DNA of 63,791 nucleotides, counting the filler, from Corallochytrium limacisporum Hawaii (lineage: Eukaryota > Protista > Pluriformea): NCBI GenBank assembly GCA_002811645.1. It is 4 parts of 4 records of this genome, joined end to end, with 100 filler letters (N's around TTAATTAATTAA, not from the genome) between each part and the next. Parts side by side here need not be neighbours in the genome. Positions count along the whole stretch, not along the records: positions 18,417 to 44,810 come from PDIP01000129.1; 3 more parts are not named here. One strand, given 5' to 3'. The notes under the pieces were generated by a model that was not told the DNA's origin, searched no databases, and was given only the letters and a program-made list of their open reading frames with translations. The first letter of the stretch is position 1. The number at the start of each line of letters is the position of its first letter. This document shows, one piece after another, positions 5,601 to 35,109 of this stretch. The position numbers were made by a program, and so were the translations under genes.

Positions 5601-5711
5601 TGTCGTATAGGCATAGTCTTTGTGATTTTTAAACGAGTTATTGCCCAACAGTTTTTATTTTGGTGTGAACGTGGAATAGATACGGAAACCAGCAATATAT
5701 ACAGATAAACG

Positions 5712-16430: not shown

Positions 16431-17993
16431 TTAGAGTACAGTACGGCGCACGTTGTAGTCCTGCAGACCGCTTCTGAGGGTGTCGAAGTAGTAGTTATAC
16501 GTATGGGAAGGATATAGAGCGTAGATAGTGCCTGTGGCACTGCGGTACCAGCTCTCGCAAGTGGTCCATACCTTGTTGCCGAACTGGCTACCAACACTGG
16601 TCATCCAGTTCTCCACACTTTCTGGCTTAGCATCAATCTCATCCGCTCCTACAGCTTCCGCTTCCTTCAGCAGCTGCATGACGTAGTTGATCTGACACTC
16701 GATCATATAGATAATGGAATTATGACCCAGACCGGTGTTGGGACCGAGCAAGGAGAAGACATTCGGGAACCCGTTAAATGAAACACCGAGCAGAGACCGG
16801 GGGTTGTCACCCACCATTTCACCAAGGTCTTTGCCCCCCTTACCAACGGTACGGACGGTCTCGGCAAAGGACAGCAGGTTGAAACCAGTTGCGTAAATGA
16901 TCACATCAAACTGACGTTCTTCGCCAGTCACAGTCTTGATTCCATGCGGAGTAGCGGCAACAATCTTGTCGGCCACCACATCAACGTGCGGTTGGTTTAG
17001 TACCTCGTAGTAATCGTTCGAGAGCAGAAGGCGCTTGCATCCAGGATCGTAGGATGGGGTCAGCGCCTTAGTTAGCTCTGGCTTTTCTTTCATTGCGCCT
17101 TTGATACGCCTCTGCAGCTGTTTCTTAATCCAGCCGTTGAACCAAGTGCCCTTGAACCAGATCAACCGAAAGCGGACCTCCAGAAGGAAATATGTCAGCA
17201 TGCGATCAACATATTGGTAGCCAGGGACGTAGTTGCATAAAAACTTCTCAAAGGAACTGTACTCACGGTCTTCACGGGGCGCAATCCAGTGACTGGACCG
17301 CTGGAAGACAGTCATGGACTTGACCTGGTCGACAATCTCGGGCATGAATTGAATGGCCGACGCAGCATTGCCAATGACAGCCACACGCTTGTCAGTGAGA
17401 TCTACACTGTGGTCCCACTCAGCGCTGTGGAACTGTTCGCCCTTAAACGACTCACGGTCGGCCATGTCTGGGTAGCGTGGTGTATCCAGGCCCCCGGTGG
17501 CACGCACAAAGTACTTGCCAGTGTATTTGGAGCCATCGGCACACTCGACAGTCCACAGGCACCTGTCCTCATTCCAGACCGCACTTGTCATTTCCTTGTT
17601 GAAGAGCATCTTGTCTGTGATGTTGTACTTCTTCGCACATCTGCGCATGTACGCAAGGATCTCACGCTGAGTAGCATACTTGCGCCTCCAATTCGGATTG
17701 GGTTCAAAAGAGTATGAATACATCACCGAAGGCACATCGCATTGGCACCCCGGGTAAGTGTTCTTGTACCATGTACCACCGAAGTCGTCTTCTTTCTCGA
17801 GAACAACGAAGGGCACTCCTTGTTCTTGCAGTTTAATGGCCATACCTAATCCAGAGAAACCACTGCCCACAATGATCACCATGGCGTCAATATCATTTTC
17901 GATCTCCATGCGAACTTTCCATTTGGAACCTGCCTCCTGCAGTGCGGTTGCGCTGGTTCCAAACCCAGCCATTTTGGAGAGTGTCTTCAGCAT
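16431..17993 (-). CDS. Type I Baeyer-Villiger monooxygenase, copy 2 (tandem paralogue)
   Basis: GSGFSG; GGTWYKNTYPGCQCDVPS; FKGEQFHSAEW; VIGNAASAIQ; shares GPNTGLGHNSIIYMIECQ with copy 1. Confidence 0.93.
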   Translation of the reverse strand: MLKTLSKMAGFGTSATALQEAGSKWKVRMEIENDIDAMVIIVGSGFSGLGMAIKLQEQGVPFVVLEKEDDFGGTWYKNTYPGCQCDVPSVMYSYSFEPNPNWRRKYATQREILAYMRRCAKKYNITDKMLFNKEMTSAVWNEDRCLWTVECADGSKYTGKYFVRATGGLDTPRYPDMADRESFKGEQFHSAEWDHSVDLTDKRVAVIGNAASAIQFMPEIVDQVKSMTVFQRSSHWIAPREDREYSSFEKFLCNYVPGYQYVDRMLTYFLLEVRFRLIWFKGTWFNGWIKKQLQRRIKGAMKEKPELTKALTPSYDPGCKRLLLSNDYYEVLNQPHVDVVADKIVAATPHGIKTVTGEERQFDVIIYATGFNLLSFAETVRTVGKGGKDLGEMVGDNPRSLLGVSFNGFPNVFSLLGPNTGLGHNSIIYMIECQINYVMQLLKEAEAVGADEIDAKPESVENWMTSVGSQFGNKVWTTCESWYRSATGTIYALYPSHTYNYYFDTLRSGLQDYNVRRTVL

Positions 17994-18517: not shown

Positions 18518-20323
18518 CTAGAAGGGTACAATTCCATTGCCAGTGCGCCCAAAGTATCCTTTGCGACAATGGTCCATGTTGCTGCCTTCCATTACTCCCG
18601 GCACATCTTGGATGCGCTCTAGCCACTTGCTGATGTGGGGATAGGTGGCAATAAGAGGCCCGTTAAGCAGCATGCGGAGATAGTACACTTCGTCCATGCG
18701 GAAGATTGTGGGAAACAGACGGACATCTGCTTCAGTCAGAGCGCTGCCGCACAGCCAGTGGCGACCATCAGACAGTTGATCTTCGATCGTGGCGATGGCA
18801 CGGTAAAAATCGCGAAAGCCTTTCTCGTACACCTCGTTGCTCGCACTGAAGCCAGTGCGGTAGGCCCCGTTGTTGATATAAGTATAGATATACGTATTCC
18901 AGCTGTCAATTTCAGCTTGCAGTTCAATGGGGTACAAATCTAGCTCCTTGCCCAGGCCAGCAGTCTTGAATTGTGTCTCCATCATGCGCAAAATCTCAGA
19001 GCTTTCGTTCGAAACAATCTTCTTCAACTTCTTGTCAAAGAGTATAGGCACACTTCTTTCTGTTGATCCCTCCATCTGGTAGATTTCAGGAATGTACTGC
19101 TTGCCATTGACTGTGTCTGGAGTACATACACGATCTTTGTCGGGTCTAAATTGCCACCATCCCCTGTCTTCGCTTCTTCGGTACCAGAGGACATCCATTG
19201 TGATATCTTTCTCCAGACCCATAATGGTGCGACCAACGGCTGCCCGATGGCACCATGGGCAGTTATAGGCGATGTACAGATGGTACCGTCCAGATTCAGG
19301 CGGGAACTCCTCAGAACCGATCCAATTGCGATGGGCGCTGTCCTTGCGAGTGAATTCGTTGACCTTTCCTTTCCCCTGCACATCCTTGGTATCGGCACCG
19401 GCGGTGTGTGTTGCGATAGACCACGGCTCCTTGATGAAGCGCAGTCGTCCATGGGGCCTCATGAAATCCGAAACCGCACCTGCAGGAGTTAGTCGCCGAG
19501 GATTCTGACTGAAACTGTTGCAATAGTGGGTCTCGAGGATACTGTCCCAGTTCAAACCCGCTCCACCTAGCATAGTTGTGATGTCGTACGCGAAGTCCTT
19601 TGCATTTTGGTACTGCTTCAACCGTGTTCTGCTCAGTTTGTAGATCATGGCATAGACCGAGTCTAGCCGGACAAGGATGGCGTACAGAAGCATATCATTG
19701 ACTGATAGAATGTCATTGTGTCCGATGAATCGCTGTTCCCCGAGTACTTTTTCAGTATGATCAAGTTGCAAGCAAACACTAGCTCGATTTTGCTCGTAAT
19801 TCTTCTGGTTGTCGGGAAACCCCATATCAAGGATGCTCCGATACAAGATCAAGGATGACTCGTCACCCAACTTTGACTCTGGGTCGAAGAGTTCAAGGAA
19901 GTCACCATCCTTTTTGCGGCCATAGGATGAGATAGTATCCACAATGTCCTGGAATTTTCCGACTGCAACCCCGGTGCTGGGTTTGAATAGACAAGGGACC
20001 GGTGGGAGCTCAGCAGGATCACCTTTAAATTCTCGATGGACATCTACAGTCACAATGCGATCAATATCTTCACGACTCTTGATGGTGGCTCCTTGCCATT
20101 GAATAGGAAGCTCAAGGTTAAATCCGTTATTTTCGACAAATCTGAGTTCCACCGGAGAGTCTTGAACTGCATGAATTACTGGACCGCTTCCGCGCAAGCC
20201 AGTCGCTGCATTATCACCTTTAGAAAATTCAACCCATCCGAGAGAGCGCAGGTGCAACAAGACTGCATGTGAGAGTGCATCCCCGGCCCGGGATACGACA
20301 AGAAGATCTGGAGAGCCTGGCAT
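18518..20323 (-). CDS. Glutathionyl-hydroquinone reductase (Xi-class GST, YqjG/Ecm4 family) with an additional degenerate N-terminal copy of the same domain
   Basis: C-terminal half: FPPESGRYHLYIAYNCPWCHR, SVPILFDKKLKKIVSNESSEI, INNGAYRTGF, TEADVRLFPTIFRMDEVY, GIVP. N-terminal half retains 'NDMLLYAILVRLDSVY...HYCNSFSQNPRRLTPAG' but no CPW motif. Confidence 0.88.
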   Translation of the reverse strand: MPGSPDLLVVSRAGDALSHAVLLHLRSLGWVEFSKGDNAATGLRGSGPVIHAVQDSPVELRFVENNGFNLELPIQWQGATIKSREDIDRIVTVDVHREFKGDPAELPPVPCLFKPSTGVAVGKFQDIVDTISSYGRKKDGDFLELFDPESKLGDESSLILYRSILDMGFPDNQKNYEQNRASVCLQLDHTEKVLGEQRFIGHNDILSVNDMLLYAILVRLDSVYAMIYKLSRTRLKQYQNAKDFAYDITTMLGGAGLNWDSILETHYCNSFSQNPRRLTPAGAVSDFMRPHGRLRFIKEPWSIATHTAGADTKDVQGKGKVNEFTRKDSAHRNWIGSEEFPPESGRYHLYIAYNCPWCHRAAVGRTIMGLEKDITMDVLWYRRSEDRGWWQFRPDKDRVCTPDTVNGKQYIPEIYQMEGSTERSVPILFDKKLKKIVSNESSEILRMMETQFKTAGLGKELDLYPIELQAEIDSWNTYIYTYINNGAYRTGFSASNEVYEKGFRDFYRAIATIEDQLSDGRHWLCGSALTEADVRLFPTIFRMDEVYYLRMLLNGPLIATYPHISKWLERIQDVPGVMEGSNMDHCRKGYFGRTGNGIVPF

Positions 20324-20726: not shown

Positions 20727-22664
20727 ATGGAAGGTGATTTCAAACAGGGTGTGCGAAGAGCACTTGTTCGATTACTAAACGAAAGTGCAAAGCGTGACGC
20801 AGACCATGCTGACACTGAGTCCAGGCAGGGACCATTTCAACATAGCCGGGCAACCAATTGGACAAGAGCCTTGCGACGGGCCCTGAGAGGTTTAGACGAG
20901 CACACAGGGTCAGTGGAATGCACATCGGACCTTTTTGACGTCCACGGCTTTGGGACTGCGACTATCAATAAAGTGGATACAGAGCTCCGAAGGGTTGAAG
21001 GTAACCCACTCGGACATGAGGCTTCAGAAACTACTTCCAGGCTGAGCAAAGAAGATGTCGGCACGAAAAGTAGCGGGAGCACAGAAACGGGAAAATGGCC
21101 CAAGCGACGCACCGGTTCCAGTGGCATCCTTATTGCGCTCGCGATCCTGCACGGTCAAGTGGGCAAGTCCGAGACTTTTCCAAAGAAAACAATCGTCGCA
21201 AAGGCACAGCCATACTCAGACTCCAGCTACACAGTGGCACCACCGACTGCTAGGCGGTCGAACCCAGCCGTAGGTGGTAATAGGAAGGTTTTTAACTATA
21301 CAGCGTGGAATTGCATGAAGACTCTGCTCAACAAGAATCTGGTCTCAAAGCACAGTCGTAACTATAAACTAACTGATGAAGGCATTCTACTAGCGGGAAG
21401 GCACGCACTAGCTTGCGGTGTTTCTCTGACTTCCACTGTAGACGCTAGGGATGAAGTCAGTGAATCTAATTTCGTACCTTCGCCGCCGCGTAGCAACCCA
21501 TCAGGAAGTGATGGTACTGGGCGGCTACTCAATAACTGGCAAGACATTTTACACGACTGCACAAACCGGCTGGCAAGTTTGGGACTGGATCCCAACATCC
21601 CCACATTTATTGACACTAGATCACGAAAAGTGCCGTGTAGGTGCCAAGCTGCCACACGGAAAATCGCTGGAAGGACGGCATACCGAGCTACGGTGAATCC
21701 ATCTTACGCATCTTTAATCGAAGGTGGAATCATAGACATCTCGGCCCAACCGAAAGGGGGAGATGATCGGTTGACAGTGTGGTTACCCCACGATGGAAAG
21801 GCATGCTGTCGGAGCGCGTCAGTCCAAAGTTCACGGTCGTTTTCTGTTTCTCAGCTGAGTAGCCAGATCCAAAGGAGTCTGCATGTGACTGAGGGACCCG
21901 GTGCCTCAGGGTCTGTTCGCATCCTTATAGACAACAGAGAGCCGAACAAGGCATCAATGTTGAGGAAACTGCGGCAGGTGGGTATCGATGCAGAAGTCCG
22001 TGCCTTGCCAATTGGGGACTTCCTTTGGGTTGAAGACGTTGATGGGTGTGAGACGGTACTGGACTTTGTCGTTGAGCGAAAGCGTTTGGATGACCTGCAC
22101 CAAAGTGTAAAGAATAAGCATTTGGAAAGCCAACTGAATCGGCTGCACATGGCAGGATTTAGTCAAACGTTCGTACTCTTGGAAGATTATGGGAAAAGCT
22201 CGGGTGATGCGAAGGTTCTTCATGGCGTGCTATCTCAGCTTCTTTTCCGTGAAATGGTGAGCCTGCTGTATTCATACGGTCCTGGAGACACATGTAAGAT
22301 ATTGGAAACGCTCACACTTAACCTGCACAACCATAGTCGAAAGGCACTGATCAAGTGGGAAGACTTTTCGGACCATTTAAAAAGCTACACGGGGCCAAAG
22401 ACGCACAACGATATGTTTATTTTAATGTTAGCAAACGTACGTGGAATTTCGCTAGTGACTGCTGAATGTATTGCAAAGCAGTACCAGACTTTGGCTGCGT
22501 TTGTGAAGTCCATGCGGACAGACTACACGTCACCTGCAGATGCTATTTTGGCATTGGCATCATCGACAGTTGGCGGTGATGGCCATGGGAAACGATTGGG
22601 TCCGAAAATTGCAGAAAATCTGTACAGTACGTTCATTGGGGATGGAAAGGATGTGAATGATTGA
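20727..22664 (+). CDS. MUS81: Crossover junction endonuclease Mus81
   Basis: N-terminal HhH (VHGFGTATINKV), winged helix (YTAWNCMKTLLNKNLV..YKLTDEG), ERCC4 nuclease (ILIDNRE, LPIGDFLW, VVERKRLDDL) and C-terminal HhH2. First ATG at 20727. Confidence 0.92.
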   Translation: MEGDFKQGVRRALVRLLNESAKRDADHADTESRQGPFQHSRATNWTRALRRALRGLDEHTGSVECTSDLFDVHGFGTATINKVDTELRRVEGNPLGHEASETTSRLSKEDVGTKSSGSTETGKWPKRRTGSSGILIALAILHGQVGKSETFPKKTIVAKAQPYSDSSYTVAPPTARRSNPAVGGNRKVFNYTAWNCMKTLLNKNLVSKHSRNYKLTDEGILLAGRHALACGVSLTSTVDARDEVSESNFVPSPPRSNPSGSDGTGRLLNNWQDILHDCTNRLASLGLDPNIPTFIDTRSRKVPCRCQAATRKIAGRTAYRATVNPSYASLIEGGIIDISAQPKGGDDRLTVWLPHDGKACCRSASVQSSRSFSVSQLSSQIQRSLHVTEGPGASGSVRILIDNREPNKASMLRKLRQVGIDAEVRALPIGDFLWVEDVDGCETVLDFVVERKRLDDLHQSVKNKHLESQLNRLHMAGFSQTFVLLEDYGKSSGDAKVLHGVLSQLLFREMVSLLYSYGPGDTCKILETLTLNLHNHSRKALIKWEDFSDHLKSYTGPKTHNDMFILMLANVRGISLVTAECIAKQYQTLAAFVKSMRTDYTSPADAILALASSTVGGDGHGKRLGPKIAENLYSTFIGDGKDVND

Positions 22665-22698
22665 ATCCCTACACACCCGCTTGCGGATACACACTCGA

Positions 22699-23454
22699 TC
22701 ATGACTTGAAGGCGTATCCAGGAACATGCTTTCCGAACCACCAGGCGGAAGGCTGCTGGCGGTCCTTCCTGAATTTCAATCTAAGGTCCTTTAGGTTTTC
22801 TTCCATGTTCGGAATACGTGCTGACAACAGATCCTGCATGGTATAGGCCGACACGATCCTTGCTTTCCTCTGAAGCTCGGCTAGCGGTGTGTCTTCATCA
22901 CCATCAGGTCCGACATTAGTTTGGGCGGGCTTCGGGATCGGACTACCAGATAGGGCACTGATCCTAGTCTCACCATTCCAGGTGATGGTTGTAGGGCGCT
23001 TCAACACCGGATCCAGGAGCTGGAAGTCGCGATAGTCTCGCTCTGCGTAGGCTTCCCGACATTCGTTTTCTCCATTGGCCCCCATGCCCCACAGTTGCCG
23101 GGGTCGTAGTCCAGAGACCAAGACTCTGTAAGCAATTGTGTCAATGTTCTGCACTTTGCAGATTGTTCCAATTTCAGCAGGATTGTCACTGCGCATGCAC
23201 ACGACGTAGTCGTTTTCGAAGTATGGCTGCTTCTCATACTGGCCGAGTGGTCTCGGCAGAATAAACCCTTTGTATCTCACCATGCCTTTCGTGACCACAA
23301 CATTCTGCAATTGATTAGGGTTTACTGGGTCGAGTGCTATATATTTTCCCCGAAATGGATACTTTTTAGCAAGTTCTGCCATAACATAGTCTTTCTTGAT
23401 CGGTGCCTTGCCGCGGAGGGCTGACGGTAGCGCCCGCACAGCTCTGCCTCGCAT
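22699..23454 (-). CDS. MRPL24: Mitochondrial ribosomal protein uL24m
   Basis: KOW-like 'IGTICKVQNI..RVLVSGL', then 'FQLLDPVLKRPTTITW..RISALSGSPIPKP..GDEDTP', matching uL24m; basic N-terminal presequence. Confidence 0.8.
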   Translation of the reverse strand: MRGRAVRALPSALRGKAPIKKDYVMAELAKKYPFRGKYIALDPVNPNQLQNVVVTKGMVRYKGFILPRPLGQYEKQPYFENDYVVCMRSDNPAEIGTICKVQNIDTIAYRVLVSGLRPRQLWGMGANGENECREAYAERDYRDFQLLDPVLKRPTTITWNGETRISALSGSPIPKPAQTNVGPDGDEDTPLAELQRKARIVSAYTMQDLLSARIPNMEENLKDLRLKFRKDRQQPSAWWFGKHVPGYAFKS

Positions 23455-23909
23455 TGCAAGTATTTCTCTATGTTTGCTTTCGACGCTGTGCCACGTTCTC
23501 AGGTCATTGTTGTGACAGACTATAACGTTGCGTAATTACTGGTCACGTCGAAGATCTGGAGGCTACACTTATAGCTTTCTTTCTCGTGCTTGAGCAATCG
23601 TGGATGGGAGTAGCGGGTTGGTCCCGCAAACAATATGGGCGATCATGTGGGCCCCCTCCCAACCTGCTCCTCATGTACGTACTCCTTTCCGGCCCAGTTT
23701 TAGTACTGGGCAAGCCCGGTCCCATCAGCGACCAATACTGAAACGCTTAGGGCACTGATAAATCAATATTTTCGGCGGTGGGCCCGCAGTGGAGGGGGGT
23801 GTCTGAGCAAAGGTAGACAAGACCGACAGCTAATGTGAATGTCAAGCAGGAAGACAACATCAACTAGCAAATGTATGGTCTATTACAAAATTGATAACAA
23901 TGTGACATA

Positions 23910-24452
23910 ATGGGACTGAGTGTTTTAGAGTTTGTCTTTGGTGTAGGCCTCGCCACATATGTCATTGGTCCCCAACAGTTGCCTGCTGTAGCAAGACAAG
24001 TGGGTAGAACAGCGGGATCTGCTGTCAGAATCATATCGTCATATCGTGACACGGTTTACAAGCAGATGGCCGGCAACAAAGCCGGCGAAATAGAAAGACA
24101 ATTGGAAGAGGCTTACGACGATTTGGCCAGAGTACGGAGAGATATTCGCGGAGGGATTAGTCTTTCCCGAAGAGTTGTTTCCTATATCCCCAGCAGCCGT
24201 GGAACCAGTAAAACAACTGCGTCTGAAAGTGCCGGTGTTGACCAGTTGAAGGACGACGAGCAGCTTCACACAGTCACACCAACAGAATCCGCAAGTTCAG
24301 AGAACAGCCCAACATCACTGCCACTGTTCTCATCGAGACCGCTATCTCGCGACGTCCCGATTGGTGTCCAGCCATCAACAGGATCCAGCATTCTATTAGA
24401 GTCCTTAGTCAGAGAAGGACGAGCACAACTGGAGAAACTAAAATTGAAGTAA
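23910..24452 (+). CDS. tatB: TatB-like twin-arginine translocase subunit resembling plant mitochondrial TatB
   Basis: N-terminal 'GLSVLEFVFGVGLATYVIGPQQLPAVARQVGRTAG' gives a conserved Glu, short TM helix, GP..LP hinge and amphipathic helix. 'IERQLEEAYDDLARVRRDIR' and C-terminal 'GSSILLESL' resemble plant mtTatB segments as I recall them. Confidence 0.75.
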   Translation: MGLSVLEFVFGVGLATYVIGPQQLPAVARQVGRTAGSAVRIISSYRDTVYKQMAGNKAGEIERQLEEAYDDLARVRRDIRGGISLSRRVVSYIPSSRGTSKTTASESAGVDQLKDDEQLHTVTPTESASSENSPTSLPLFSSRPLSRDVPIGVQPSTGSSILLESLVREGRAQLEKLKLK

Positions 24453-24457: not shown

Positions 24458-25864
24458 ATGCACTCTATGACCGGAGAACGAGGAGCATTTGTGTGGATCC
24501 TTCCGAAGAGACTCGCTGTCCTCGACCAGACCGCGAGTTCTTTGCTGGTAGAACCGGCTAATGAACAAGCGGGGTTGCCAACATTAAGGTGTCTTCTGCA
24601 AGCAGAACAGACTTCAGATGTTCTGGTTGTTGTATTTGGGTACTACGTGAAGAGGAAAGCGATGACAAGAAAGCGCAAAAGTGGGGACCCAGAGTTCATG
24701 GGACCATCGTTGATTCACAATTTAGTGGTGGGAGACGAGACCATCGGGCGAATGGACCTGCCGTGCTGGAAACATGACCAATTGAAGAACCCTTTACCAA
24801 GATCTCCAGTAGTAGCAATCCTGCGCAGGGTGTCCATTCGCAAGGGACGGAACGGAAGATTGTACGCGTCTGTTGGGTCATCCTCCTGTGTGTCCATTGT
24901 CCAAAGAGAAGAAGACATTAATCAAGGAAATGTCAGTCTCGAAATGTGTACTCGTTTCAGTTCATTAACTAAATTGCTGCATTTGTCTCACTTATTTGAT
25001 CGATGCCATACCATGGCAGGAAGGCATCTGGAATGTGTTGACATAGATGTGGGCATTTACGATGCTGTGACCAATAGTGAAGATTGCTGTTTTCTGGAAG
25101 TGGCCGTCCAGACAGCGACAGGCCAGCACGCAACTCTTCTTTGCCTTCATGAATCCTTCATTTTGACTTTGAAAGAGCATATCCGTAACAAGATTAGGTC
25201 TTTTCGCCTCTCTGATATGATTATGATCACCACAGGTGGAGTTTTACAATATCAGACCACGACAGATTCATCTGTTTGTCCTATTGCTCAACTGGAAGTA
25301 ACCAGTCCTGCACCGGCACCTACGTCCCTCCTGCACGTGTGCCAAAAGGGCAAGAGCGATCGAGTTTATGTCTGTCAGATCAGCGTGTCCTTTCTTGTCT
25401 GGCGGTCAAGTGAGCATGATTGGATTGGGTTTTCCAGAACTGGAATTCATTTGGGACCCGACTACCACCTGTCTACCTTGACCATGAGGCTGTGTCAAAT
25501 GTGCCATATCGCTATCGAAACGAGTACAGCGATATGTCCACGTTGCCATCGTCACGGCCCTCCGATTGTGCTGAGGAATCCTGATGTCACTGTACACGAC
25601 CCAACATGCCAAACGGGGGTCCCTGCACAATTGCTAAATGCTGAAAGCTTGTTCCGCGGAATTGAAGTAAGCGCCATCCTTGATGGCGATTCTCGTCACC
25701 AACGCTTGCTGTACCAAAGCCTTCGAAGATTCATTGATAGAACACGCCATGTCTATACTGTTCATGTCAGGAAGCGTGAGAGTGGTGTCTTACTCATAAC
25801 GCGTCTAGATTTTCCGAGCATTTCGGATGTGTTTGCTACAGATTCTATTCTTCCCGACGAGTGA
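24458..25864 (+). CDS. Multi-OB-fold ssDNA-binding-type protein with a C4 zinc ribbon (SHLD2/RPA70C-like)
   Basis: OB-like 'DVLVVVFG...NLVVGDETIGRMDLPCW...VAILRRVSI' and C-terminal CQMC-x10-CPRC followed by 'VTVHDPT', the layout of RPA1-C/SHLD2/CTC1-type OB folds. Confidence 0.5.
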   Translation: MHSMTGERGAFVWILPKRLAVLDQTASSLLVEPANEQAGLPTLRCLLQAEQTSDVLVVVFGYYVKRKAMTRKRKSGDPEFMGPSLIHNLVVGDETIGRMDLPCWKHDQLKNPLPRSPVVAILRRVSIRKGRNGRLYASVGSSSCVSIVQREEDINQGNVSLEMCTRFSSLTKLLHLSHLFDRCHTMAGRHLECVDIDVGIYDAVTNSEDCCFLEVAVQTATGQHATLLCLHESFILTLKEHIRNKIRSFRLSDMIMITTGGVLQYQTTTDSSVCPIAQLEVTSPAPAPTSLLHVCQKGKSDRVYVCQISVSFLVWRSSEHDWIGFSRTGIHLGPDYHLSTLTMRLCQMCHIAIETSTAICPRCHRHGPPIVLRNPDVTVHDPTCQTGVPAQLLNAESLFRGIEVSAILDGDSRHQRLLYQSLRRFIDRTRHVYTVHVRKRESGVLLITRLDFPSISDVFATDSILPDE

Positions 25865-26807
25865 ATTGCTGCACCAGCTGCTTGTATTGTTCCCAAATCA
25901 CGAAGGTGAGAATAGTATGGGGAAAGATCCGCAGGAAGTGCGGAAACAGCCCCTTGTAGAATCCTTGAGGTCCCTCTCGTGCAAAAATCTTCTGAATACA
26001 GTCAAAGAGACCATTGTACCGCGCTGCCTTAATATGACCCTTCGTTCCCTCAATTTTCTGGTTGAATAACCGAGTGCTCACTACATCCAATGGATTCATA
26101 CCGACAGCCACACATACTCCAGACATCGACGCCACCAACAAGTGAGTTGGGAAACTGTCTTGCATCCCCTGTTTTCTGGTCAAGTACTCCTTGAACGACT
26201 CATACGTGGTAAGTTGTATGGAAGAGCCCACCATTACACGAGCAGCTGCAGCCTGCACCCCACGAAAGAGACCTCCAAACCCCTCCTGGTTCATGATGTG
26301 TGCTACTGCAGCACGCATGGTCGTGTAGCCGTGCTGATCACCGACAACTGCATGGCCAGGAGCCCTGCTCTGAGCCTGGAGCTGTGTCTTGATTAGCTGA
26401 AATGGAGTGCCCGCAATTGCGCCGACGACGCCCGCCAAGGCACCACTCAAGAGTCTGTACTGAAACTCACGTTTCTCCCAATCGTCGTCTAGGCTATGGA
26501 ACATGGCCTTGAAGGGGCCGTAGGTACCCAAGCGTAGACCATTCATGGTGAGTTGGTACCCCAACGCCGGAACTAAGCCACCTTGTATTCCACTAACTCC
26601 TTCATAGCGTCCAATCTGATAGAAAGCCTGCAGGAAGTTCTTGTACACACGTGGTTTTGCACCACGTTTCACGCCTTCTCCGTCTAACTGCATGCGAATC
26701 TTGACAACTTCAATAGGATTCGTGAAAAATCCTGCGGTGACGGTTGCCGCACCACCAGTTAGGTGTTCTACCCACGGAGTATCTGCGGTAGGAGTTGCAG
26801 CGGCCAT
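25845..26807 (-). CDS. Mitochondrial carrier (SLC25), OAC1/SLC25A34-35-like
   Basis: Three carrier signatures (PIEVVKIRMQ, PFQLIKTQLQ, PLDVVSTRLF); 'GIQGGLVPALGYQLTMNGLRLG' and 'RIFPHTILT' are typical of the OAC1 subfamily. Confidence 0.9.
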   Translation of the reverse strand: MAAATPTADTPWVEHLTGGAATVTAGFFTNPIEVVKIRMQLDGEGVKRGAKPRVYKNFLQAFYQIGRYEGVSGIQGGLVPALGYQLTMNGLRLGTYGPFKAMFHSLDDDWEKREFQYRLLSGALAGVVGAIAGTPFQLIKTQLQAQSRAPGHAVVGDQHGYTTMRAAVAHIMNQEGFGGLFRGVQAAAARVMVGSSIQLTTYESFKEYLTRKQGMQDSFPTHLLVASMSGVCVAVGMNPLDVVSTRLFNQKIEGTKGHIKAARYNGLFDCIQKIFAREGPQGFYKGLFPHFLRIFPHTILTFVIWEQYKQLVQQFTRREE

Positions 26808-27494
26808 GTTGAACTAAATGGTTTTGCCGCCCCCAGGAGTTTAAGTTACAGGCTTTAACTTCGATGGCTTTTTGCAAACACCTGACTTCTCTGATCACAA
26901 GTACCTGATCATTATTCTATCCCTTCATATATTATTGTGCACGAAGAATGGCGTGAGAATTTCAGTTCCTGACGACCCCGTGGGTCACGGGTACGATCTC
27001 CCTCCCTTTTTCCTCTTGCAGTAGCAAGACTATCAGGCGGGTCTCCTTAGTCTTTGTGGTTGTGCACTCTCCAATCACTCTCTGTTGCTATACTAGAATG
27101 CCAAATGTGATGGGGTGTAAGGCTCTGCCTGCGGCTAATCTCGTCCAAACGTTAAAACTGGGTGTCACTGTGGAGCACTAACCAAGTGCCTCGTCAGATT
27201 TAATCTTGCTGTGAGACGCAATTGTGAACATGGTACAAGTTACAAAAGGGCTATTTATGTGGTACCGACAAAAATTTGACATGGTTCATGGCCCTCAGGG
27301 CCCTTGAAGGAGTGAATTCTCTACTCACGGATACGTGGTAAATGCAGGCCTTTAGAGAAATCAAGGGAGGGGAGGTCAAAAACAGTACGAAGCGGCAAAC
27401 ATAGGGAAAGTTCCAATCTCTTGATTTTTCACTAAGAAACATCCCATCCGAGTCACCCCCTACGCACCAATCTCGACATCAGCAGTCGGCCGCT

Positions 27495-28373
27495 TCATTC
27501 CCAGGGCTTCTTCGGGACTGCCTCCGCACCACTTGCTTCCGGCAGTGGTTGGTCATCCTGCGTTGTCATGTCAATTTTTCTGACGCCGGGGAGTTCCAGA
27601 CCCTTCTCTACCATCTCGGCCAGTTCCATGAATGATCGTGGGTAGGGTGTGGCATCGCTGCTTTCGTTGGCCTCCATTGTGTCGCTTTCCTTTGCTGGGT
27701 CACCATTGCCAGTGATGGACACCCCACTGCCTTCTTCCTGTCTGATACGCTTATACTGGACATAGTCCAGGGATCGGAATGCCTTAGAGAAATAGAAAAC
27801 CTTAGCTTTCTCGTACACTTCTGGACTAGGCGGAGAATCAGCACCCATTGATCTCTGTAAGCTGTCCCAGCCGGTTAGGAAAGTCTGATCCTGTTCGAAA
27901 TCATAAGCCTCGAAGGCATCAGCAAGGCTGGAGGGGTTGCTGTCCGCCATATGCCAAAACATTGCTGTTTCTACTGCTGTTGCGACGAATTGAATCAATG
28001 TTTCTTGAGCTTCAAGATGATCTACACTGGTAGCGCACAGTAATTGGTGGAGATTGAAGAGATCTGTTTGACCTCTAGCATCTGCGTCGCCCCCAGGCCC
28101 ACAAGCCATACGCACATTTTGTCCTCTTGCGTTCTGGATAACATCGTCTAAAGCAGTTCCAGCTCCAGCTTTCAATAAAGAAGTGTACAGGGTGGAAAGA
28201 GAAACGTAGACTGAATCTCTCGCAGAAAAAGTAGTAAAATCAGCGACGTCAAGCTGATCCGATAGCTTTTCAATAGCGGGCTTTGGTACAAAACAACGAG
28301 CAAACTGGTTATTAAATGTCTTGACATCACCTATCCCAAATCCAGTTTGGGAGTGTGTTGCATCCCCACCCAT
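27495..28373 (-). CDS. PEX39: Peroxin PEX39-like (C6orf226/YJR012C family; HTH segment plus KPWE motif) with an N-terminal extension
   Basis: 'FEAYDFEQDQTFLTG..EKAKVFYFSK', 'PYPRSFMELAEMVEKGLELPGVRKI' and terminal KKPWE. Confidence 0.8.
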   Translation of the reverse strand: MGGDATHSQTGFGIGDVKTFNNQFARCFVPKPAIEKLSDQLDVADFTTFSARDSVYVSLSTLYTSLLKAGAGTALDDVIQNARGQNVRMACGPGGDADARGQTDLFNLHQLLCATSVDHLEAQETLIQFVATAVETAMFWHMADSNPSSLADAFEAYDFEQDQTFLTGWDSLQRSMGADSPPSPEVYEKAKVFYFSKAFRSLDYVQYKRIRQEEGSGVSITGNGDPAKESDTMEANESSDATPYPRSFMELAEMVEKGLELPGVRKIDMTTQDDQPLPEASGAEAVPKKPWE

Positions 28374-28848
28374 GTCTCACGGTTGTGGTTCAGAGTCACG
28401 CGCAGTTGATCTATTTATTAGAAACGCTCACTCCTGCTTACATTGTGATTCGCGACTTTACTGTGCAAACACGTACACGTGATTACAAGGTTCCAGATGT
28501 ATGGGACCGGCATCCTCGCTGAACTACCTAAACAAGCGAGCAGTGGTTAACACCTGCCACAGCTGAGGTTTTGCTGTGCCGGGTATATCCCTCAAATCCA
28601 TAAGAATACTGGAGGCCCATAACCAACCCATTACAAATCCCTCCCCCACCCACCCCCGGGGGGCACTTCCTACCCTGCCCTTCAGAATCCAGATTTCACC
28701 CAGGTCCGCACTCCGAGTGGGTATCTAAGGTTCTTCGTTGGTGAAAGCAGGCACTTGAATCCATAGCGTAGACCCTCCTGGAATGCACAGGATACCATAA
28801 GCAGATGCAAAGTTTTGGAGAATGTAGCACCTCAGAGGGTTAAACAGA

Positions 28849-31209
28849 ATGATTTCTCCTGAAGATGAACAGGACGTCCACGCTGAGTTTGAAAATGTGG
28901 ACAGCAGAGTCAAGACCGGTCACCGCAAGGGCCGACGTCGTCGCAATAATCAGGTTGGTCGGCCGCGGAGAGGTGCATTGTCACTTATGCAGCAAGATAT
29001 GATGGGCAAAGCAAATATGCAATACGTTGATGGGAAGCTGTCAGAGGCTGCAGAACTAGCGAAATCCATTGTCCAGGAGAATCCGCATGCACAGGAACCA
29101 TATCAATTATTGAGTACCATATTCGAAGAACTCGGCGACGTTCGGCAGGCATTTAATTTTGCGCTAACTGCGGCATATTTACAAAGAACAGATCCAGAAT
29201 TGTGGTCAAAGAGTGGCTTCTTTGCTCTGGAGCTAGGAGATCAGGAGAAAGCGCTCATGTGCTTTGGTCGGTGCCTAAAATGGAATGCGAAGCGGGTACA
29301 GAAAAGAGAGTCTGCTGGAGGCTCTCTTCATTTAGTCTACTCCAAATCAGATAACACAGACGTACTATGGGAGATCATCCGAATCTACATGGCATTGGGA
29401 GATGATGATAATGCAAAGAAGTATTTGGATAGACTGTTACGTCGGGAGCCTTCCAGTCTTGATGCTCGCATGGAAATGGCTAATTTACTGTATCGTCAAG
29501 GAGACTATCAGGAAGCACACTGGATTCTAAGGCAAGGAGTGGACGTGTCTACCAACACGCTCTCACTGGAGCAGGTTGCGGTATATTTCCAGTTGTGCAT
29601 TGCAGCGGAGTGCTATCGATGCATCTTGCCTCTGGCAAGAAGACTTTTTGGTTTCACCCTAGGGCCCACATTTGCCGAGCAGGTGATGAAGGAAAAGTTG
29701 CCTATCGACCTCGAACTCCATATTACAATTGCTCTGCTTCATTGTGAACCGGGTATGGCCAGTGACGGGGTCAAGTTGGCACAGCAGGTTTTAACGTGCA
29801 TCCCAGTTTCGCCATATGCTGATTTGTATTCTATCGTTGCGAAGGCGTTGCACACGTTCAATTCTGTCAACACATCCGGAAGTGGTCCCGCGCTGGAGGC
29901 TACCAGGCCGGACTCTGTGAACCTGGAAAGGACCCTGTGGAAGGCATTGTCCAAGGTGAACGCAGGTGAAGTACCCGCTGAGGTTCGACCCGACCAACTG
30001 GTTACTAAATGCAAAGCATTTTATCTGTACTGTCTATCCAAAGGCAGCCAGCCATCGTCACAGAATGGTGAAGACCTCGTCCAAGAAATGGAATTGTGCA
30101 TTGCGGATTTGACAGGACGAAATTTGCTAGAAACCGACGGAGGAGCAGAATGCATTAACTGGCTATTGGAGCGGTATCTGGAAAGAATTGAGTTCCTGCA
30201 GGCCGCCAGAGTGCTGCACTATGGCAGTGGAACGTGGGAGGACCAGGCAACTGACATTCGACAGCTCTCTGAAGATCTTAGCCCGTGGACGATAGCACAA
30301 TTGATACGTCCATCGCTCAGCTCCTTTTCACATATTCATTCTGTCGCTCTGCAGCTACTTGAGGCGGTACCAAATATCATGACTGACATTGACAAATTGG
30401 CGCAAGTTGCAGATGGGCTGACGCTGTGTGTTGTCCCTCACCTGATTCGCCTCGCGATTGCAGGATCCAAAACCAGGAACGAGATACGTGCTTTTTCCGG
30501 ATTATTCCCCTTAGTGGATGAAGCAAATCTGGCAGACGGCAAGGATTCACTGAGGGAACTGGAACAGTCCGACCAAGAGCTCATGCATGGTCTTGAAGTC
30601 CTCATCGGATTGCTGTGGTTCCGTGACATGTACGATGAATTGGAGACATTGATCAATGCAGCGCAGATCGCTTTCAAACGATCAGAGCCATTTGGGCACA
30701 AACTACTGAGTTTACAGTCGTTCAAAAGCATTTTGAGTACGCGGGCTGGCTCTAAAATTGCACTGCCAGAGAAATCGATCTCCCTAAGTGACACCGATGA
30801 ATCCTATTGGTATGCATTGGATCTGCGTGCCCTCAAAGATTCTTCAATGAGGCCAGATCCCAAGATGTCTCTACAATACGCGAAACCATTAGGGTTACGT
30901 AAATATCACCAATTACTTTATCTCTATCACAACAGCACAAGATGTCCCGGGGGTTCATCCAATGATGCATGCGAGTCTTTGACGTTGTTGATGTCGTCAC
31001 TTCTGCAACGGAAAACAGAATACAAGCAGGACGGAGATCAGGACGAGACTGCTATGGAGGTAATGATGGCACTTCTCGCGATTCACTTCTTAGTGAACAA
31101 TGTAGACACCAGTGGGCTCACTGACGATTCTTTATCTGTATTGACAAACAGGGTTCTACTTCAGGACACTAGATTTCAAAGCCTTTTCTCAGGTAACTTA
31201 AGATCCTAA
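28849..31209 (+). CDS. GTF3C3: TFIIIC TPR subunit (Tfc4/tau131/GTF3C3)
   Basis: Basic patch, then 'MMGKANMQYVDG...SIVQENPHAQEPYQLLSTIFEELGD...LTAAYL..DPELW' N-terminal TPR array; 'LPIDLELHITIALLH' and 'YADLYSIVAKAL'. C-terminal part is divergent. Confidence 0.78.
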   Translation: MISPEDEQDVHAEFENVDSRVKTGHRKGRRRRNNQVGRPRRGALSLMQQDMMGKANMQYVDGKLSEAAELAKSIVQENPHAQEPYQLLSTIFEELGDVRQAFNFALTAAYLQRTDPELWSKSGFFALELGDQEKALMCFGRCLKWNAKRVQKRESAGGSLHLVYSKSDNTDVLWEIIRIYMALGDDDNAKKYLDRLLRREPSSLDARMEMANLLYRQGDYQEAHWILRQGVDVSTNTLSLEQVAVYFQLCIAAECYRCILPLARRLFGFTLGPTFAEQVMKEKLPIDLELHITIALLHCEPGMASDGVKLAQQVLTCIPVSPYADLYSIVAKALHTFNSVNTSGSGPALEATRPDSVNLERTLWKALSKVNAGEVPAEVRPDQLVTKCKAFYLYCLSKGSQPSSQNGEDLVQEMELCIADLTGRNLLETDGGAECINWLLERYLERIEFLQAARVLHYGSGTWEDQATDIRQLSEDLSPWTIAQLIRPSLSSFSHIHSVALQLLEAVPNIMTDIDKLAQVADGLTLCVVPHLIRLAIAGSKTRNEIRAFSGLFPLVDEANLADGKDSLRELEQSDQELMHGLEVLIGLLWFRDMYDELETLINAAQIAFKRSEPFGHKLLSLQSFKSILSTRAGSKIALPEKSISLSDTDESYWYALDLRALKDSSMRPDPKMSLQYAKPLGLRKYHQLLYLYHNSTRCPGGSSNDACESLTLLMSSLLQRKTEYKQDGDQDETAMEVMMALLAIHFLVNNVDTSGLTDDSLSVLTNRVLLQDTRFQSLFSGNLRS

Positions 31210-32325
31210 TAGAAGATCTAAAGCGCGACTAACTTGTCCATTAGCTGCTATCACAGCTTGTTCCACCTCAATGTGTGCAAAGCCCATTCCTATCAGGTGG
31301 GAAACAGCTTCGTCGTGACTTGGCGATGGCTTTGGCTGTACCGGTGCATCTGACTCTCCCGAGAGATCGATAACAACCTCATTCTTAGACGTAGCGTGAG
31401 ACTTGTTTTGCAGGTTCGGCTCCTTTTGACGAGATCTTTGTTTCAAGATCTCGGCAGCCTTGTGTAAATTCCCATTTGCTTGTACCATGGCGTTTTGGAG
31501 CGCGTCATTGTCCTCGACATGAGTCAGCCATCTCAGCCTATTCAGTCGGGAATCAGACTGTGGCTCACTCGTACTACAGCCCAGGATTGTCCCCCCCGAG
31601 TGCACAGCACTCGCTTCCGCTGAAACACCTTTCCGTTCCAAAAACTTGTCAAGATTGGATTGGGATGAGTCCTTGGGCTTCTTTTTCTTGCCCTTTCGAT
31701 AGTCCTCCGGTTCTTTGGTCTTGACGTATTTCCCACTGCAAGTAGCTGCATGCCTGTGCCAGAAGCACTGCTGTTTACAGCGCCCTCGCCTACGGAGGTA
31801 TGGACAATCCTTTTCGGACGGTGGTCGATTCATTGCACGACGTACCTCATCTTTACACACATCACATTGCCAATGATGGGTCCTGAAATGCTCCACCTCA
31901 TCATGGAAACTATGATACACGGTGATGTTGTAGCCACTTGGTGGTCGGTATGGGTCAAGGTCCGGGTTCGCGTATCGACCTCTCCCGCAGTTGATCTCAA
32001 GTGCGATTCTGAGAAATGCAGGTCCATGGTCTTCTCTATCTATGTCTTCCCTAGTTCCATTTGCCCCCAAAAATTGATATGCATGGATCATTTCATGTAG
32101 CAAGGTTTCCTTACCTTCCTTCGCTGTTCTGAACTGCAACAGCTGTTCACTCAGTACAATTTCTACTAGTCCATTCGAACATAATTTACAGTAACCAGCA
32201 CACAAGGTCATGCGGCCAGTTGACCATCGGAGCTTGACTGCGTTTTTTGATAGTAATGAGTTAAAATATGCTGCATCGTATGCGAGGAACATGTCATGAA
32301 TGTCTGGTAGAACGTCAACTTCCAT
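31198..32325 (-). CDS. SPRTN: SprT-family DNA-protein crosslink protease Spartan with a PIP box and C-terminal UBA-like domains
   Basis: 'PDIHDMF', 'RMTLCAGYC', 'ETLLHEMIHAY..HGPAF', 'YNITVYHSFHDEV..HHWQC', 'RRAMNRPPS..HAATCSGKYVKTKEPE'; QSNLDKFL PIP-like motif; MGF-type UBA. First ATG at 32325. Confidence 0.92.
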   Translation of the reverse strand: MEVDVLPDIHDMFLAYDAAYFNSLLSKNAVKLRWSTGRMTLCAGYCKLCSNGLVEIVLSEQLLQFRTAKEGKETLLHEMIHAYQFLGANGTREDIDREDHGPAFLRIALEINCGRGRYANPDLDPYRPPSGYNITVYHSFHDEVEHFRTHHWQCDVCKDEVRRAMNRPPSEKDCPYLRRRGRCKQQCFWHRHAATCSGKYVKTKEPEDYRKGKKKKPKDSSQSNLDKFLERKGVSAEASAVHSGGTILGCSTSEPQSDSRLNRLRWLTHVEDNDALQNAMVQANGNLHKAAEILKQRSRQKEPNLQNKSHATSKNEVVIDLSGESDAPVQPKPSPSHDEAVSHLIGMGFAHIEVEQAVIAANGQVSRALDLLLGS

Positions 32326-34122
32326 AGTGCCATCTCTATCGTTCACAATGAGGACCAGCCCCCACACGTACCCAAGCTTGATGTGTAGTTCATTGTACCT
32401 CCATGAAGTCTGCAGTAAATGTTGAAGATGTAGTGGCCCTTCACATAGCCCAGCGGTGCGAGGGAGATGTACATCCACCCCGATTATCTCAGACCGGCGG
32501 GCAGCGCTGCCGAGCGGGGTTCCCCATACATGGATTAGTTTTTTAAAAAAAAACAGATTACTTAAATAATATGAACGTCCTCCCCAACCGGAAGGTTAGA
32601 ACCCGCTGCTTGATGACACGGTCTATTCGTTCGTTGCCACACAGACTTTTCGCGTAAGTGGGCTCTCTGGAGCGTGCCTTACTATGACGGAGGGGGATTC
32701 CACCCACACACCGCAACCCAACAACCCATAGCCAGCCAACAGCAACAAGAAATGAATTAACGTCCCAAGAATGAGTTGGCACTCTAACTTGCTGTGGAAG
32801 TCATTCTACGGTGTACGCTTGTCTATGATCCGGAAATGCCAGAGCTCCATGTATCAAATTTATTCCCACTTCAGTAGTTGACTACTACCTCGTATGATCT
32901 CATGCTCCAGGCACTCCAAGCTAGTCGAGAATGTGGTGTCAAAAGTTCGTGGTTTTGTGGACTATACTGTGGATTGCAGATACGGCAATCCTTCTGAACC
33001 ATGGTATTTGCGCAGCCGCCAACGAAACATGGTTCGCTCGCCATATCCACTCTACCCAACTGGAGGTTTCAGTACACGGTCGACCTGCCTTTTTTGAACG
33101 TCAACCGGTGTCGGTATGATATGATGTAAAGATATTTTGACAGATCGAGTTTCGCTTCCATATTGCCACAAGTGAGCTGTGATACTAGTGTATCACCCCA
33201 GGTAGCATCGTAGCATCGTCGGGTGCAACAGCCAGGGCAATGATGGCTGTTCCGCTAAAAGAACCACCAATTAAGATGATCTACTATTGTATTTTCGACT
33301 CGCGTTGGTTGTTGATTGTGCATGCTGTGCCTATGCGTATGGACACAGGCATTTGACATGCGTGTTACGTGATAAAACAGCTGTCCCTACCGCAGCAACC
33401 GGCGCGAAACCGAGGAACGCTGGGTTACGTCAATGCGACTGTGTGACTTTTGTTTGCCCTGATATATCTTCTCAATACTACCTTCGTCCTACCTCTCATC
33501 GCTTATCTTCCTCCATTCCATCACTGGTGGGCGGCATTGGAGAGGGGACGGGATAGGCTTACAACCCTCCATAACGAAGAGAAAATTTTCTTCACTGGTT
33601 TGCTACTACGAGCCGATCTCTTTCTCACCCTCTCACCATGGAAAGCAAACGTTGAAAAAGGCGAACGAGCGAGTCTGAGGGAGTAGGGGCGGGAAATGGG
33701 GACGCCGTGTTTTTTTAGTCCATCATACATACCGCAGATCTCCTGGCATTTCCCCCCTGGATTCCATGTCTGCCAATTCGAAAGCAGAGGCAGAAGGCCC
33801 GCGAACACAGCAAGATCACCCAGCATATTTGCACTCCCGTGGTAGATGCGGGTCGGTGGTGAACCTTAGGGATCACATAAGTGCGCAAGCGGTGACCGTG
33901 TCCACAGAAATAGGGACAAATATGGGACCCACGCAATCGGTGGCGAGAATGTGATTAGTAGATATGCACAAGCTCTCCTCGGGCAGTCCTGAAGGCAGGT
34001 ATTTTCACTCTTACAGTAAGCGAATCAGGCAAGTGTGTCGTCACTTTGATAGAACTCAACAGTCGAGAAAGTGCAAAACTTCTGAAGGCTCAGTAGGTCC
34101 AGTGTAAGCTAGGATAGCAATC

Positions 34123-35109
34123 ATGGCAGCAGAGAAAACCCCATATCCACTGGCTTCGGTTCCTGACTTCTATCCACCTCCACCGTTGCCCCAAAACCCA
34201 GCTGGGCGTAGCCATTCGCTGCCTGGACATCCACCGTCGTACAATGCATCTGGGAGCTCATCTCCGGGATATCCACCATCGCCATCCGCTGTACTTAACT
34301 ATCAGTCCCACACACCCCCAGCACAGTATCAGCCCGGTGGATATTCACCACCGCATCACCCCCCTGCATACCCACCATCAGCTGGGTACGGGGCGGGTCC
34401 GAGTTCTCCGGGTTACCCACCTCAACACCACCATGTAGCGCCATACCCTCCACAACATGGGCAGCCGCAGCGCCACAGCATTGCTGGTACTACTGTACCG
34501 GCTGGCCAGCTTCAGCAGTATGGACTGAACAATGTAGTTTTTGCAGGAAAGAATTTCACCCTCCGCGCCGCCCCACCGAAACCCAAACCACCGGTGGAGA
34601 AGCCTCCCGCTAAGGGACTGATGGGATTCATCAAATCGGCTAAGAAAGCAATTCAAGATGCATTGCCAAAAGCCCAGGCAGCTGAATTGTATCCAACTCC
34701 CGAAGGCTGGATCTTTAATGGAGTAATTGTACCTGCACAACATCTTCAATTCAAGTATCCAAAGAATGACCAGAAGCGTAGGCAATGCACTTTTCTCAAT
34801 TATCAGTCTCAATACGACTTAGGGGAAGCTGTTGGATTCTATCCGTGCCCCAAAGGTCATTGCAAAGCAAGAGGACCACACAAGAAAATCATTAGCACCA
34901 GCTTTAAAGCAAAGGCCGGTTTGTCTTGCCTTGCGCCACCTGTAGAAATGCCAGCTCAACAGTGTTCTCGATGTGGTCATGTTCTAATCCTAAAACCTGA
35001 TCACATTCAAATTCGTGGACTCCAAAAACCTGGCAAACGCAGACGTGGGAATAGCGGAGGTTGGAACGACAGCGGCTCTGTCTGCAGTGGCGGTAGTGGT
35101 GGGAGCTGA
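34123..35109 (+). CDS. Hypothetical Pro/Tyr-rich protein with PPxY motifs and a C-terminal Cys cluster
   Basis: 328-aa ATG ORF; PPSY and PPAY motifs; CPKGHC and CSRCG; AT-rich 3' region follows the stop. Confidence 0.7.
   Translation: MAAEKTPYPLASVPDFYPPPPLPQNPAGRSHSLPGHPPSYNASGSSSPGYPPSPSAVLNYQSHTPPAQYQPGGYSPPHHPPAYPPSAGYGAGPSSPGYPPQHHHVAPYPPQHGQPQRHSIAGTTVPAGQLQQYGLNNVVFAGKNFTLRAAPPKPKPPVEKPPAKGLMGFIKSAKKAIQDALPKAQAAELYPTPEGWIFNGVIVPAQHLQFKYPKNDQKRRQCTFLNYQSQYDLGEAVGFYPCPKGHCKARGPHKKIISTSFKAKAGLSCLAPPVEMPAQQCSRCGHVLILKPDHIQIRGLQKPGKRRRGNSGGWNDSGSVCSGGSGGS

Follow-up and report, generated by a model that had tools for sequence, protein, structure and literature searches.

The window analyzed here, a stretch of 63,791 nucleotides of DNA from the protist Corallochytrium limacisporum (filler between its joined parts included), contains an open reading frame (ORF) at positions 23910-24452 of the plus strand whose product resembles TatB, a component of the twin-arginine translocation (Tat) system. 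We consider it likely that this ORF is a genuine, expressed nuclear gene for the mitochondrial TatB (mtTatB) of an opisthokont, and that its product acts with a mitochondrial TatC, as a TatBC complex, in the export of the Rieske iron-sulfur (FeS) protein.

The TatB ORF and its family

The ORF runs from ATG to TAA over 180 codons and is intronless. A preliminary description of the window, made from its sequence, had reported Glu-7, a short transmembrane (TM) helix, a GPxxLP hinge, an amphipathic helix, a second helical block, and a C-terminal GSSILLESL box; each of these is present. An AlphaFold2 model, made from a 21-sequence family alignment and having a mean predicted local distance difference test score (pLDDT) of 69.6, consists of a helix at residues 5-18, a break at residues 19-20, a long helix at residues 21-82, a disordered region at residues 83-157, and a final helix at residues 158-179. 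The parts of the ORF are as follows.

23910-24452, plus strand: complete coding sequence of the putative mtTatB, 180 amino acids and TAA; assigned from the ORF list, phmmer, the eukaryote-type profile, and its single copy
23922-23963, plus strand: predicted short N-terminal TM helix, residues 5-18, holding Glu-7; AlphaFold helix with pLDDT of ∼83-86
23967-23984, plus strand: hinge G20-P21-Q-Q-L24-P25; Pro-21 and Pro-25 are conserved in at least 90% of 44 aligned sequences
23985-24155, plus strand: predicted amphipathic helix and second helical block, residues 26-82, ending in I/V-R-x-E/D-x-R-x-G; lies in the model helix of residues 21-82
24156-24380, plus strand: disordered low-complexity linker rich in Ser, Thr, and Pro, residues 83-157; pLDDT of ∼48-59
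24381-24446, plus strand: predicted C-terminal helix, residues 158-179, opening with the GSSILLESL box; model helix with pLDDT of ∼80

Both the model and a visible hydrophobic run, which contains Glu-7 and ends at residue 19, place a single short TM helix at the extreme N-terminus of the protein. A cleavable presequence is probably absent, as deduced from the start of this helix at residue 5. Glu-7 aligns with the conserved Glu of bacterial TatB proteins, and its distance of 13 residues from Gly-20 matches that between E8 and G21 in those proteins. The segment after the hinge is basic and amphipathic; in the 44-sequence alignment Arg-29 is invariant, and Gly-32 is conserved in at least 90% of sequences. 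Further along, Ile-75 and Arg-76 are nearly invariant in the alignment of eukaryote-type homologs described below, as is Gly-158, the first residue of the GSSILLESL box (residues 158-166).

Because 43 other proteins among 1.8 billion cluster representatives matched the ORF in a phmmer search at E ≤ 1e-3 (best 9e-8), and because 28 of the 44 aligned sequences carry the Pfam domain TatA_B_E (PF02416), the resemblance to TatB, as judged from sequence, is beyond chance. All 43 matches align in register from the N-terminus. A word-indexed homolog search with the single protein as query returned the query itself only, and the same kind of search with the family alignment returned only 11 proteins, mostly unnamed.

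The phmmer matches are of two kinds. One comprises typical proteobacterial TatB proteins; the other, a eukaryote-type group, has in addition a conserved I-R-x-E-x-R-x-G motif and, near the C-terminus, a box that reads G-S/A-D/E/S-I/L-L/M-L-E-S/A-L. Most eukaryote-type matches contain this box, and no bacterial match does. The GSSILLESL segment of the Corallochytrium protein corresponds to it, aligning with the box of plant, green algal, Diphylleia, and metagenomic homologs. Members of the eukaryote-type group come from land plants (Apostasia, Riccia, Calypogeia, and Diphasiastrum, the first two being called TatB in UniRef), from green algae (Parachlorella and Trebouxia), from the choanoflagellate Didymoeca costata, and from Diphylleia rotans. 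Plant sequences were taken as mtTatB by UniRef name and N-terminal architecture only. In BLASTP alignments the ORF is 38% identical to the Didymoeca protein over 87 amino acids (E = 2e-17) and 30% identical to that of the orchid Apostasia over 144 amino acids (E = 2e-15).

When a profile of the eukaryote-type group was built with the query left out, the ORF scored 102.8 bits over residues 1-172, whereas a profile of bacterial TatB gave 60.2 bits and aligned to the N-terminal part alone; both profiles were made from matches selected with the query, so that the absolute scores are inflated and the difference between them is the informative quantity. A maximum likelihood tree of the N-terminal 110 residues, a region that omits the C-terminal box by which the groups had been defined, placed box-bearing and bacterial sequences on opposite sides of a single branch that has support of 92/89. 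This split was recovered in 88% of bootstrap trees with the ORF on the eukaryote side, the taxa of both tree and profiles having been picked by similarity to the ORF. Nearly all matches of the eukaryote-type profile in the PDB, including the top eight, were TatA or TatB chains, with E values of 8e-7 for chloroplast TatA, 2.7e-6 for a TatB, and 1.3e-3 for E. coli TatB. In a protein atlas, 29 of the 30 nearest clusters have TatA_B_E, and the top cluster is 96% eukaryotic. A Foldseek search of the PDB with the AlphaFold2 model gave no meaningful match, as expected for a simple helical membrane protein. The TatA/TatB homology and the eukaryotic affinity proposed in the preliminary description are thus borne out by the 43 matches, the profile scores, and the 92/89 split, and from these comparisons we conclude that the ORF encodes a member of the eukaryote-type mtTatB family.

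Two further eukaryote-type homologs are unnamed. One, of 157 amino acids, lies at 1081-1554 of a sequence from GCA_040384145.1 (locus L126), packed tightly beside PDS5. The other, of 183 amino acids, lies at 2343-2894 of a metagenomic sequence (locus L128) and adjoins genes for an ELO elongase and an HD-domain protein. The eukaryotic neighbors of both suggest that more unsampled protists carry a TatB gene.

The host is very probably Corallochytrium limacisporum, a holozoan and hence an opisthokont, and a close unicellular relative of animals. Its assembly totals 24,109,830 bp, and a 24.1-Mb, essentially intron-free Corallochytrium genome was published in 2017 with other holozoan genomes (PMC5560861). 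The runs that hold the sequence belong to a 2017 DNA study, which includes a second organism as well, and to two 2015 studies of slightly different strains, and this also points to Corallochytrium, a marine protist. The cullin-3 encoded in the window has no match above 42% identity other than itself; among the named matches, that of the ichthyosporean Chromosphaera (Nk52) ranks first, and most of those after it are from animals. Corallochytrium has been called the most divergent holozoan (PMC5560861), and the low cullin-3 identity fits with this. The opisthokont lineage anticipated in the preliminary description therefore agrees with the holozoan-like affinities of cullin-3. Small shares of the words of the sequence were also found in marine metagenomes.

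Candidate mitochondrial tatC, Rieske protein, and Bcs1

A 40,068-bp contig with 29% GC (C286) was identified as mitochondrial DNA (mtDNA) in which TGA encodes Trp, because its cox1 contains ten TGA codons and it carries a tRNA with anticodon UCA. The TatB gene itself uses the standard code. When the mtDNA was translated with code 4, a single membrane ORF stayed unassigned (16906-17619, minus strand); it has 238 codons, three of them TGA (Trp), and may start with GTG at codon 4. It sits exactly between the genes for tRNA-Leu and tRNA-Cys and encodes six hydrophobic segments.

This ORF is probably a tatC. With a custom profile made from 32 Pseudomonadota TatC proteins, and with the composition correction (null2) switched off, the candidate scored 28.1 bits in a colinear alignment of profile positions 26-238 of 256 to residues 22-230 of 238; the score with the correction on is given below. 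Other mitochondrial ORFs, including nad6, cox3, atp6, and nad1, reached at most 7.7 bits, and the reversed candidate reached 7.8 bits. None of 2000 full shuffles of the candidate attained the real score (mean 5.4, S.D. 3.7, maximum 21.2), and 1 of 1000 local shuffles did so when residues were permuted in 12-residue windows, which keeps the hydropathy layout. A comparison of the single mitochondrial sequence with the bacterial TatC alignment by hhalign was weak (pairwise E = 0.029, probability 1.7%). A T-P-P-D sequence in the candidate aligns with tPPD in the TatC profile, that is, with the Pro-Pro-Asp turn between TM5 and TM6; the importance of the Asp of this turn in E. coli TatC (D211) is discussed in PMC13673990. 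The same turn gave the sole PDB match of the C-terminal piece of the candidate, TatC chain 9e02_E, at an E value of 5 that is not significant alone. The N-terminal piece had no match in the PDB. The mitochondrial tatC that the preliminary description pointed to is thus probably present.

The nuclear-encoded Rieske protein of complex III (contig C257, an ORF of 346 residues) has the sequence T-R-R-A-F directly before its membrane anchor, so that the twin-arginine type of motif sought at this position is there. The Tat consensus is S/T-R-R-x-F-L-K, to which T-R-R-A-F is close. The Rieske ORF lies at 1456-2496 on the minus strand of locus L124 and, counted from the first ATG, places ∼170 residues ahead of the RR pair, a long N-terminal extension.

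Bcs1 is also encoded, as a full-length protein of 548 amino acids that matches the BCS1_N domain (positions 8-182 of 182) with an E value of 9.5e-29 and carries Walker A and B motifs as well as a hydrophobic membrane segment near its N-terminus. Judged from its genes, the organism encodes both routes, the Tat type and Bcs1. The proposal that this organism keeps a TatB-TatC system is supported by the findings on TatB, tatC, and the Rieske motif; with both routes encoded, the dependence of the Rieske protein on TatBC stays inferential. Bcs1 and Tat are not mutually exclusive according to a review (PMC8662606).

Genomic setting and transcript-like coverage of the TatB gene

The TatB gene is present in a single copy in the 24.1-Mb assembly, and no second TatB-like gene was found in the nuclear genome. 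Its contig spans at least 26 kb, and the TatB gene lies well inside it, surrounded by genes for MUS81, an SLC25 carrier, a PEX14-like protein, an SprT/UBA protein, cullin-3, and Nuf2. Three features lie immediately upstream.

22699-23454, minus strand: divergent neighbor of the uL24 family, probably mitoribosomal L24; seven PDB sequence matches, all uL24
23515-23876, no strand: uncovered intergenic stretch, presumed bidirectional promoter; a gap in the contigs of runs X3 and X4 that is covered by the DNA run X1
23877-23909, plus strand: probable 5′ untranslated leader; contigs start at 23877 and 23878 in two runs

A divergent MRPL24 gene ∼455 bp from the TatB ORF had been part of the preliminary description. 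The gap is indeed 455 bp and the neighbor is on the opposite strand, whereas its identity is less secure. The best PDB match of the neighboring ORF was uL24c (E = 7e-4), human uL24m matched with E values of 0.1-0.2, and Pfam gave no match over 22699-23454. The label MRPL24 is therefore plausible but weakly supported.

Runs X3 and X4 date from 2015, derive from two strains in separate studies, and comprise ∼13-14 Mb of contigs. Their contigs start 32-33 nucleotides upstream of the TatB ATG and are colinear with the genome, from which it follows that the gene has no introns. This coverage would be consistent with an expressed intronless TatB gene driven from a bidirectional promoter. In the strain of run X4 the TatB ORF differs from that of the window by three substitutions and an in-frame CAA insertion, all in the linker: C to G at 24279 (Pro-124 to Ala), CAA inserted after 24329, T to A at 24330, and C to G at 24331. 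The N-terminal domain and the C-terminal box are the same in both strains, at an overall divergence too low for a real test of constraint.

Only 6 nucleotides past the end of the TatB gene, and likewise on the plus strand, an ORF of 468 codons begins (24458-25864). Searches of Pfam and the PDB with this ORF gave nothing beyond a weak RING-like zinc-binding stretch (E = 0.34). Individual transcript-like contigs cover both this ORF and TatB, and the pair could therefore be bicistronic or have overlapping transcripts. At its other end the 468-codon ORF overlaps the convergent SLC25 carrier gene (25845-26807, minus strand) by 20 nucleotides at the 3′ ends (25845-25864). One contig in each of X3 and X4 passes through both, which shows the compactness of the genome.

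The mtDNA contig also contains seven large ORFs of 331-1368 codons (code 4), each with 4-20 TGA codons. Five are on the plus strand (26148-30251, 30414-33848, 36356-39571, 22568-24151, and 19179-20171) and two on the minus strand (10754-12940 and 4684-6672). All fall outside the rRNA genes (rrnS, 2524-3942; rrnL, 34184-36113). Pfam searches with their longest pieces gave no meaningful match; one piece matched Prp18 with an E value of 0.0047, below the cut-off. ORFs of such length cannot be chance products in DNA of 29% GC.

Proposed role, alternatives, and comparison with known systems

In the mechanism that we propose, mtTatB would be imported without a cleaved presequence, and the short helix at its N-terminus would hold it in the inner mitochondrial membrane while the amphipathic helix rests against the matrix side. 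Its partner in that membrane would be the mtDNA-encoded TatC (C286:16906-17619, minus strand), and the two would make up a TatBC receptor. This receptor would recognize the TRRAF motif before the membrane anchor of the Rieske protein, and TatBC would help the folded FeS domain to cross from the matrix into the intermembrane space while complex III is assembled, as in the case of plant mtTatB. We infer in this way the localization of mtTatB, the binding of TatB to TatC, the substrate, and the division of labor with Bcs1.

Several results weigh against this proposal or against the gene assignments beneath it. The curated family models scored the TatB ORF below threshold, with 11.7 bits (E = 0.16) for PF02416 against a cut-off of 21 and 23.9 bits (E = 4.4e-5) for the NCBIfam tatB model TIGR01410 against an equivalog cut-off of 56.5, and the custom TatB profiles carry the inflation already described. 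A Pfam TatC search of the whole assembly was blank, Pfam searches with three TGA-free pieces of the tatC candidate gave no match, and the custom TatC profile gave the candidate 0.6 bits, with a bias of 27.5, when null2 was on. No TatA was found in the nuclear and mitochondrial genomes, nor any TatA-like ORF in the mtDNA. That runs X3 and X4 are RNA is a guess of the tool used. RR, KR, and RK motifs in Rieske proteins are not correlated with the presence of Tat across eukaryotes (PMC6251230). Finally, with a full-length Bcs1 present, Rieske export may not need Tat. The blank genome searches can be calibrated in part: a six-frame Pfam search of the assembly found no PF02416 match at E ≤ 10, missing the TatB ORF itself. 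As both this ORF and the tatC candidate escaped the Pfam searches, such blanks are not readable as absence where short or divergent organellar proteins are concerned.

The alternative that fits these results best is that TatB and TatC are real but have ceased to export the Rieske protein; Bcs1 would do so, and TatBC would be a relic or have another role. It draws on the full-length Bcs1, which is the route in yeast and mammals, on the missing TatA, and on the extreme divergence of the mitochondrial TatC. It also draws on a survey in which the "TatC-only" machineries of Naegleria and Malawimonas failed to complement E. coli and RR-like motifs of Rieske proteins did not track Tat (PMC6251230). 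Against it, both Corallochytrium genes are intact, the N-terminal domain and box of TatB are the same in two strains (at low divergence), and the Rieske protein retains a near-consensus T-R-R-x-F. Moreover, no TatA gene dedicated to mitochondria is needed for TatBC to work in plants. Bcs1 and Tat can also, as noted, occur side by side (PMC8662606). We regard this alternative as unlikely, yet as the one with an appreciable chance of being correct.

Much less probable is a third reading, in which the ORF encodes an unrelated small single-pass membrane protein that resembles TatB by chance or convergence. The match is short, of low complexity, and below the curated cut-offs, Foldseek was blank, and one preprint holds that plant mtTatB is a structural analogue, not a homolog, of TatB (10.1101/2020.04.06.026997). 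However, the 43 library matches are in register from the N-terminus, the top PDB matches of the family profile are TatA and TatB, and the conserved residues Pro-21, Pro-25, Arg-29, and Gly-32 fall in the hinge and amphipathic helix segment of TatB. On the in-register matches and the PDB matches we rejected the idea of a chance ORF. Least probable of all, and rejected on eukaryotic context, C-terminal box, and position in the tree, is a bacterial tatB acquired by contamination or recent horizontal transfer: bacterial TatB proteins are among the significant phmmer matches, but the ORF lies mid-contig among eukaryotic genes (cullin-3, Nuf2, MUS81, and the SLC25 carrier), has the eukaryote-only box and the eukaryote side of the 92/89 split, adjoins no tatA or tatC, and is present in two strains from separate studies.

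The interpretation of the ORF as an opisthokont mtTatB can be set beside five known systems. Like bacterial TatB (E. coli; TIGR01410), the protein has a Gly-Pro hinge with a Glu 13 residues ahead of it in the membrane helix, an LP motif, and an amphipathic helix followed by further helices. Unlike bacterial TatB, it is not encoded in an operon, it has the eukaryote-specific second motif and C-terminal box, and it is separate in the tree. The Bcs1 AAA-ATPase route of yeast and mammals has the same proposed cargo and compartment but uses unrelated machinery.

The plant system is the closest in design. Carrie et al. reportedly described it in 2016 as a mitochondrial TatB with a nuclear gene, working with an mtDNA-encoded TatC (OrfX). 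To our knowledge, it has no dedicated mitochondrial tatA gene. As with plant mtTatB, the Corallochytrium gene is nuclear, and its product has the membrane helix at the extreme N-terminus, no long presequence, a hinge, a long helical region, a variable linker, and a conserved C-terminal box; the partner tatC (here a probable one) is likewise kept in the mtDNA. The protein is shorter, with 180 amino acids compared with about 235-280 in plants, and the opisthokont host is free of plastids, so that dual targeting of a plastid TatA is impossible. The plant Rieske motif is KR, whereas that of Corallochytrium is RR. Plant Bcs1 has been reported to be N-terminally truncated (10.1101/2020.04.06.026997), unlike the full-length protein found here. 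That preprint and a review cite plant mtTatB as essential for Rieske topogenesis (10.1101/2020.04.06.026997; PMC8662606).

The preliminary description also held that this gene would extend mtTatB well beyond plants. This is true of the opisthokont host, but the step beyond plants had already been taken in 2018, when nuclear mtTatB was reported in stramenopiles and cryptists with a mitochondrial tatC (PMC6251230; PMC8662606). The putative mtTatB proteins of stramenopiles (such as oomycetes and ochrophytes) and cryptists resemble the present one in being non-plant, in combining nuclear TatB with mitochondrial tatC, and in being known from sequence only; their hosts belong to a different supergroup from Corallochytrium. 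Published surveys describe opisthokont mitochondria as Tat-free (with Bcs1) or as "TatC-only". The survey by Petru et al. (2018) covered Monosiga, Salpingoeca, Sphaeroforma, and Fonticula and reported no opisthokont TatB; Corallochytrium, Didymoeca, and Diphylleia were not among its taxa (PMC6251230). In the searchable literature, outside which many papers in subscription journals lie, we found no paper that joins TatB with choanoflagellates, and none of the 15 top-ranked papers for Holozoa mentions TatB. As far as that literature shows, this is the first opisthokont case of mtTatB. The protein family and the proposed mechanism are already known. What is new is the opisthokont host, the paired cryptic mitochondrial tatC, the coexistence with full-length Bcs1, the hint of the gene in the choanoflagellate and Diphylleia lineages, and the assignment to TatBC of a lineage that had been supposed to be "TatC-only".

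Corallochytrium can be transfected. With Tat, a full-length Bcs1, and a near-consensus RR Rieske protein in one organism, how and why Bcs1 replaced Tat would become approachable by experiment.

The comparison with the greatest bearing on evolution is that with the "TatC-only" Holozoa, Monosiga brevicollis, Oscarella carmela, and Sphaerothecum destruens. Like Corallochytrium, with its probable tatC, these have mtDNA in which TGA encodes Trp and a very divergent tatC. Their tatC genes have 219-234 codons (Sphaerothecum, 219; Monosiga, 234; PMC7027106), similar to the 238 of the present candidate. Unlike in those organisms, a nuclear TatB partner was found here, and the choanoflagellate Didymoeca has one too. 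At least some holozoan "TatC-only" systems may, on this sequence evidence, really be TatBC. A broader hypothesis, to which we give an even chance, is that eukaryotes ancestrally had a nuclear mtTatB, which persisted into Holozoa, and that holozoan "TatC-only" systems are TatBC beside full-length Bcs1 on the way to animals. If this is true, Corallochytrium would be a tractable opisthokont in which to dissect the replacement of Tat by Bcs1 in Rieske export, the orphan tatC genes of Monosiga, Oscarella, and Sphaerothecum would have a possible explanation, and the TatBC arrangement would be older and wider than plants, stramenopiles, and cryptists.

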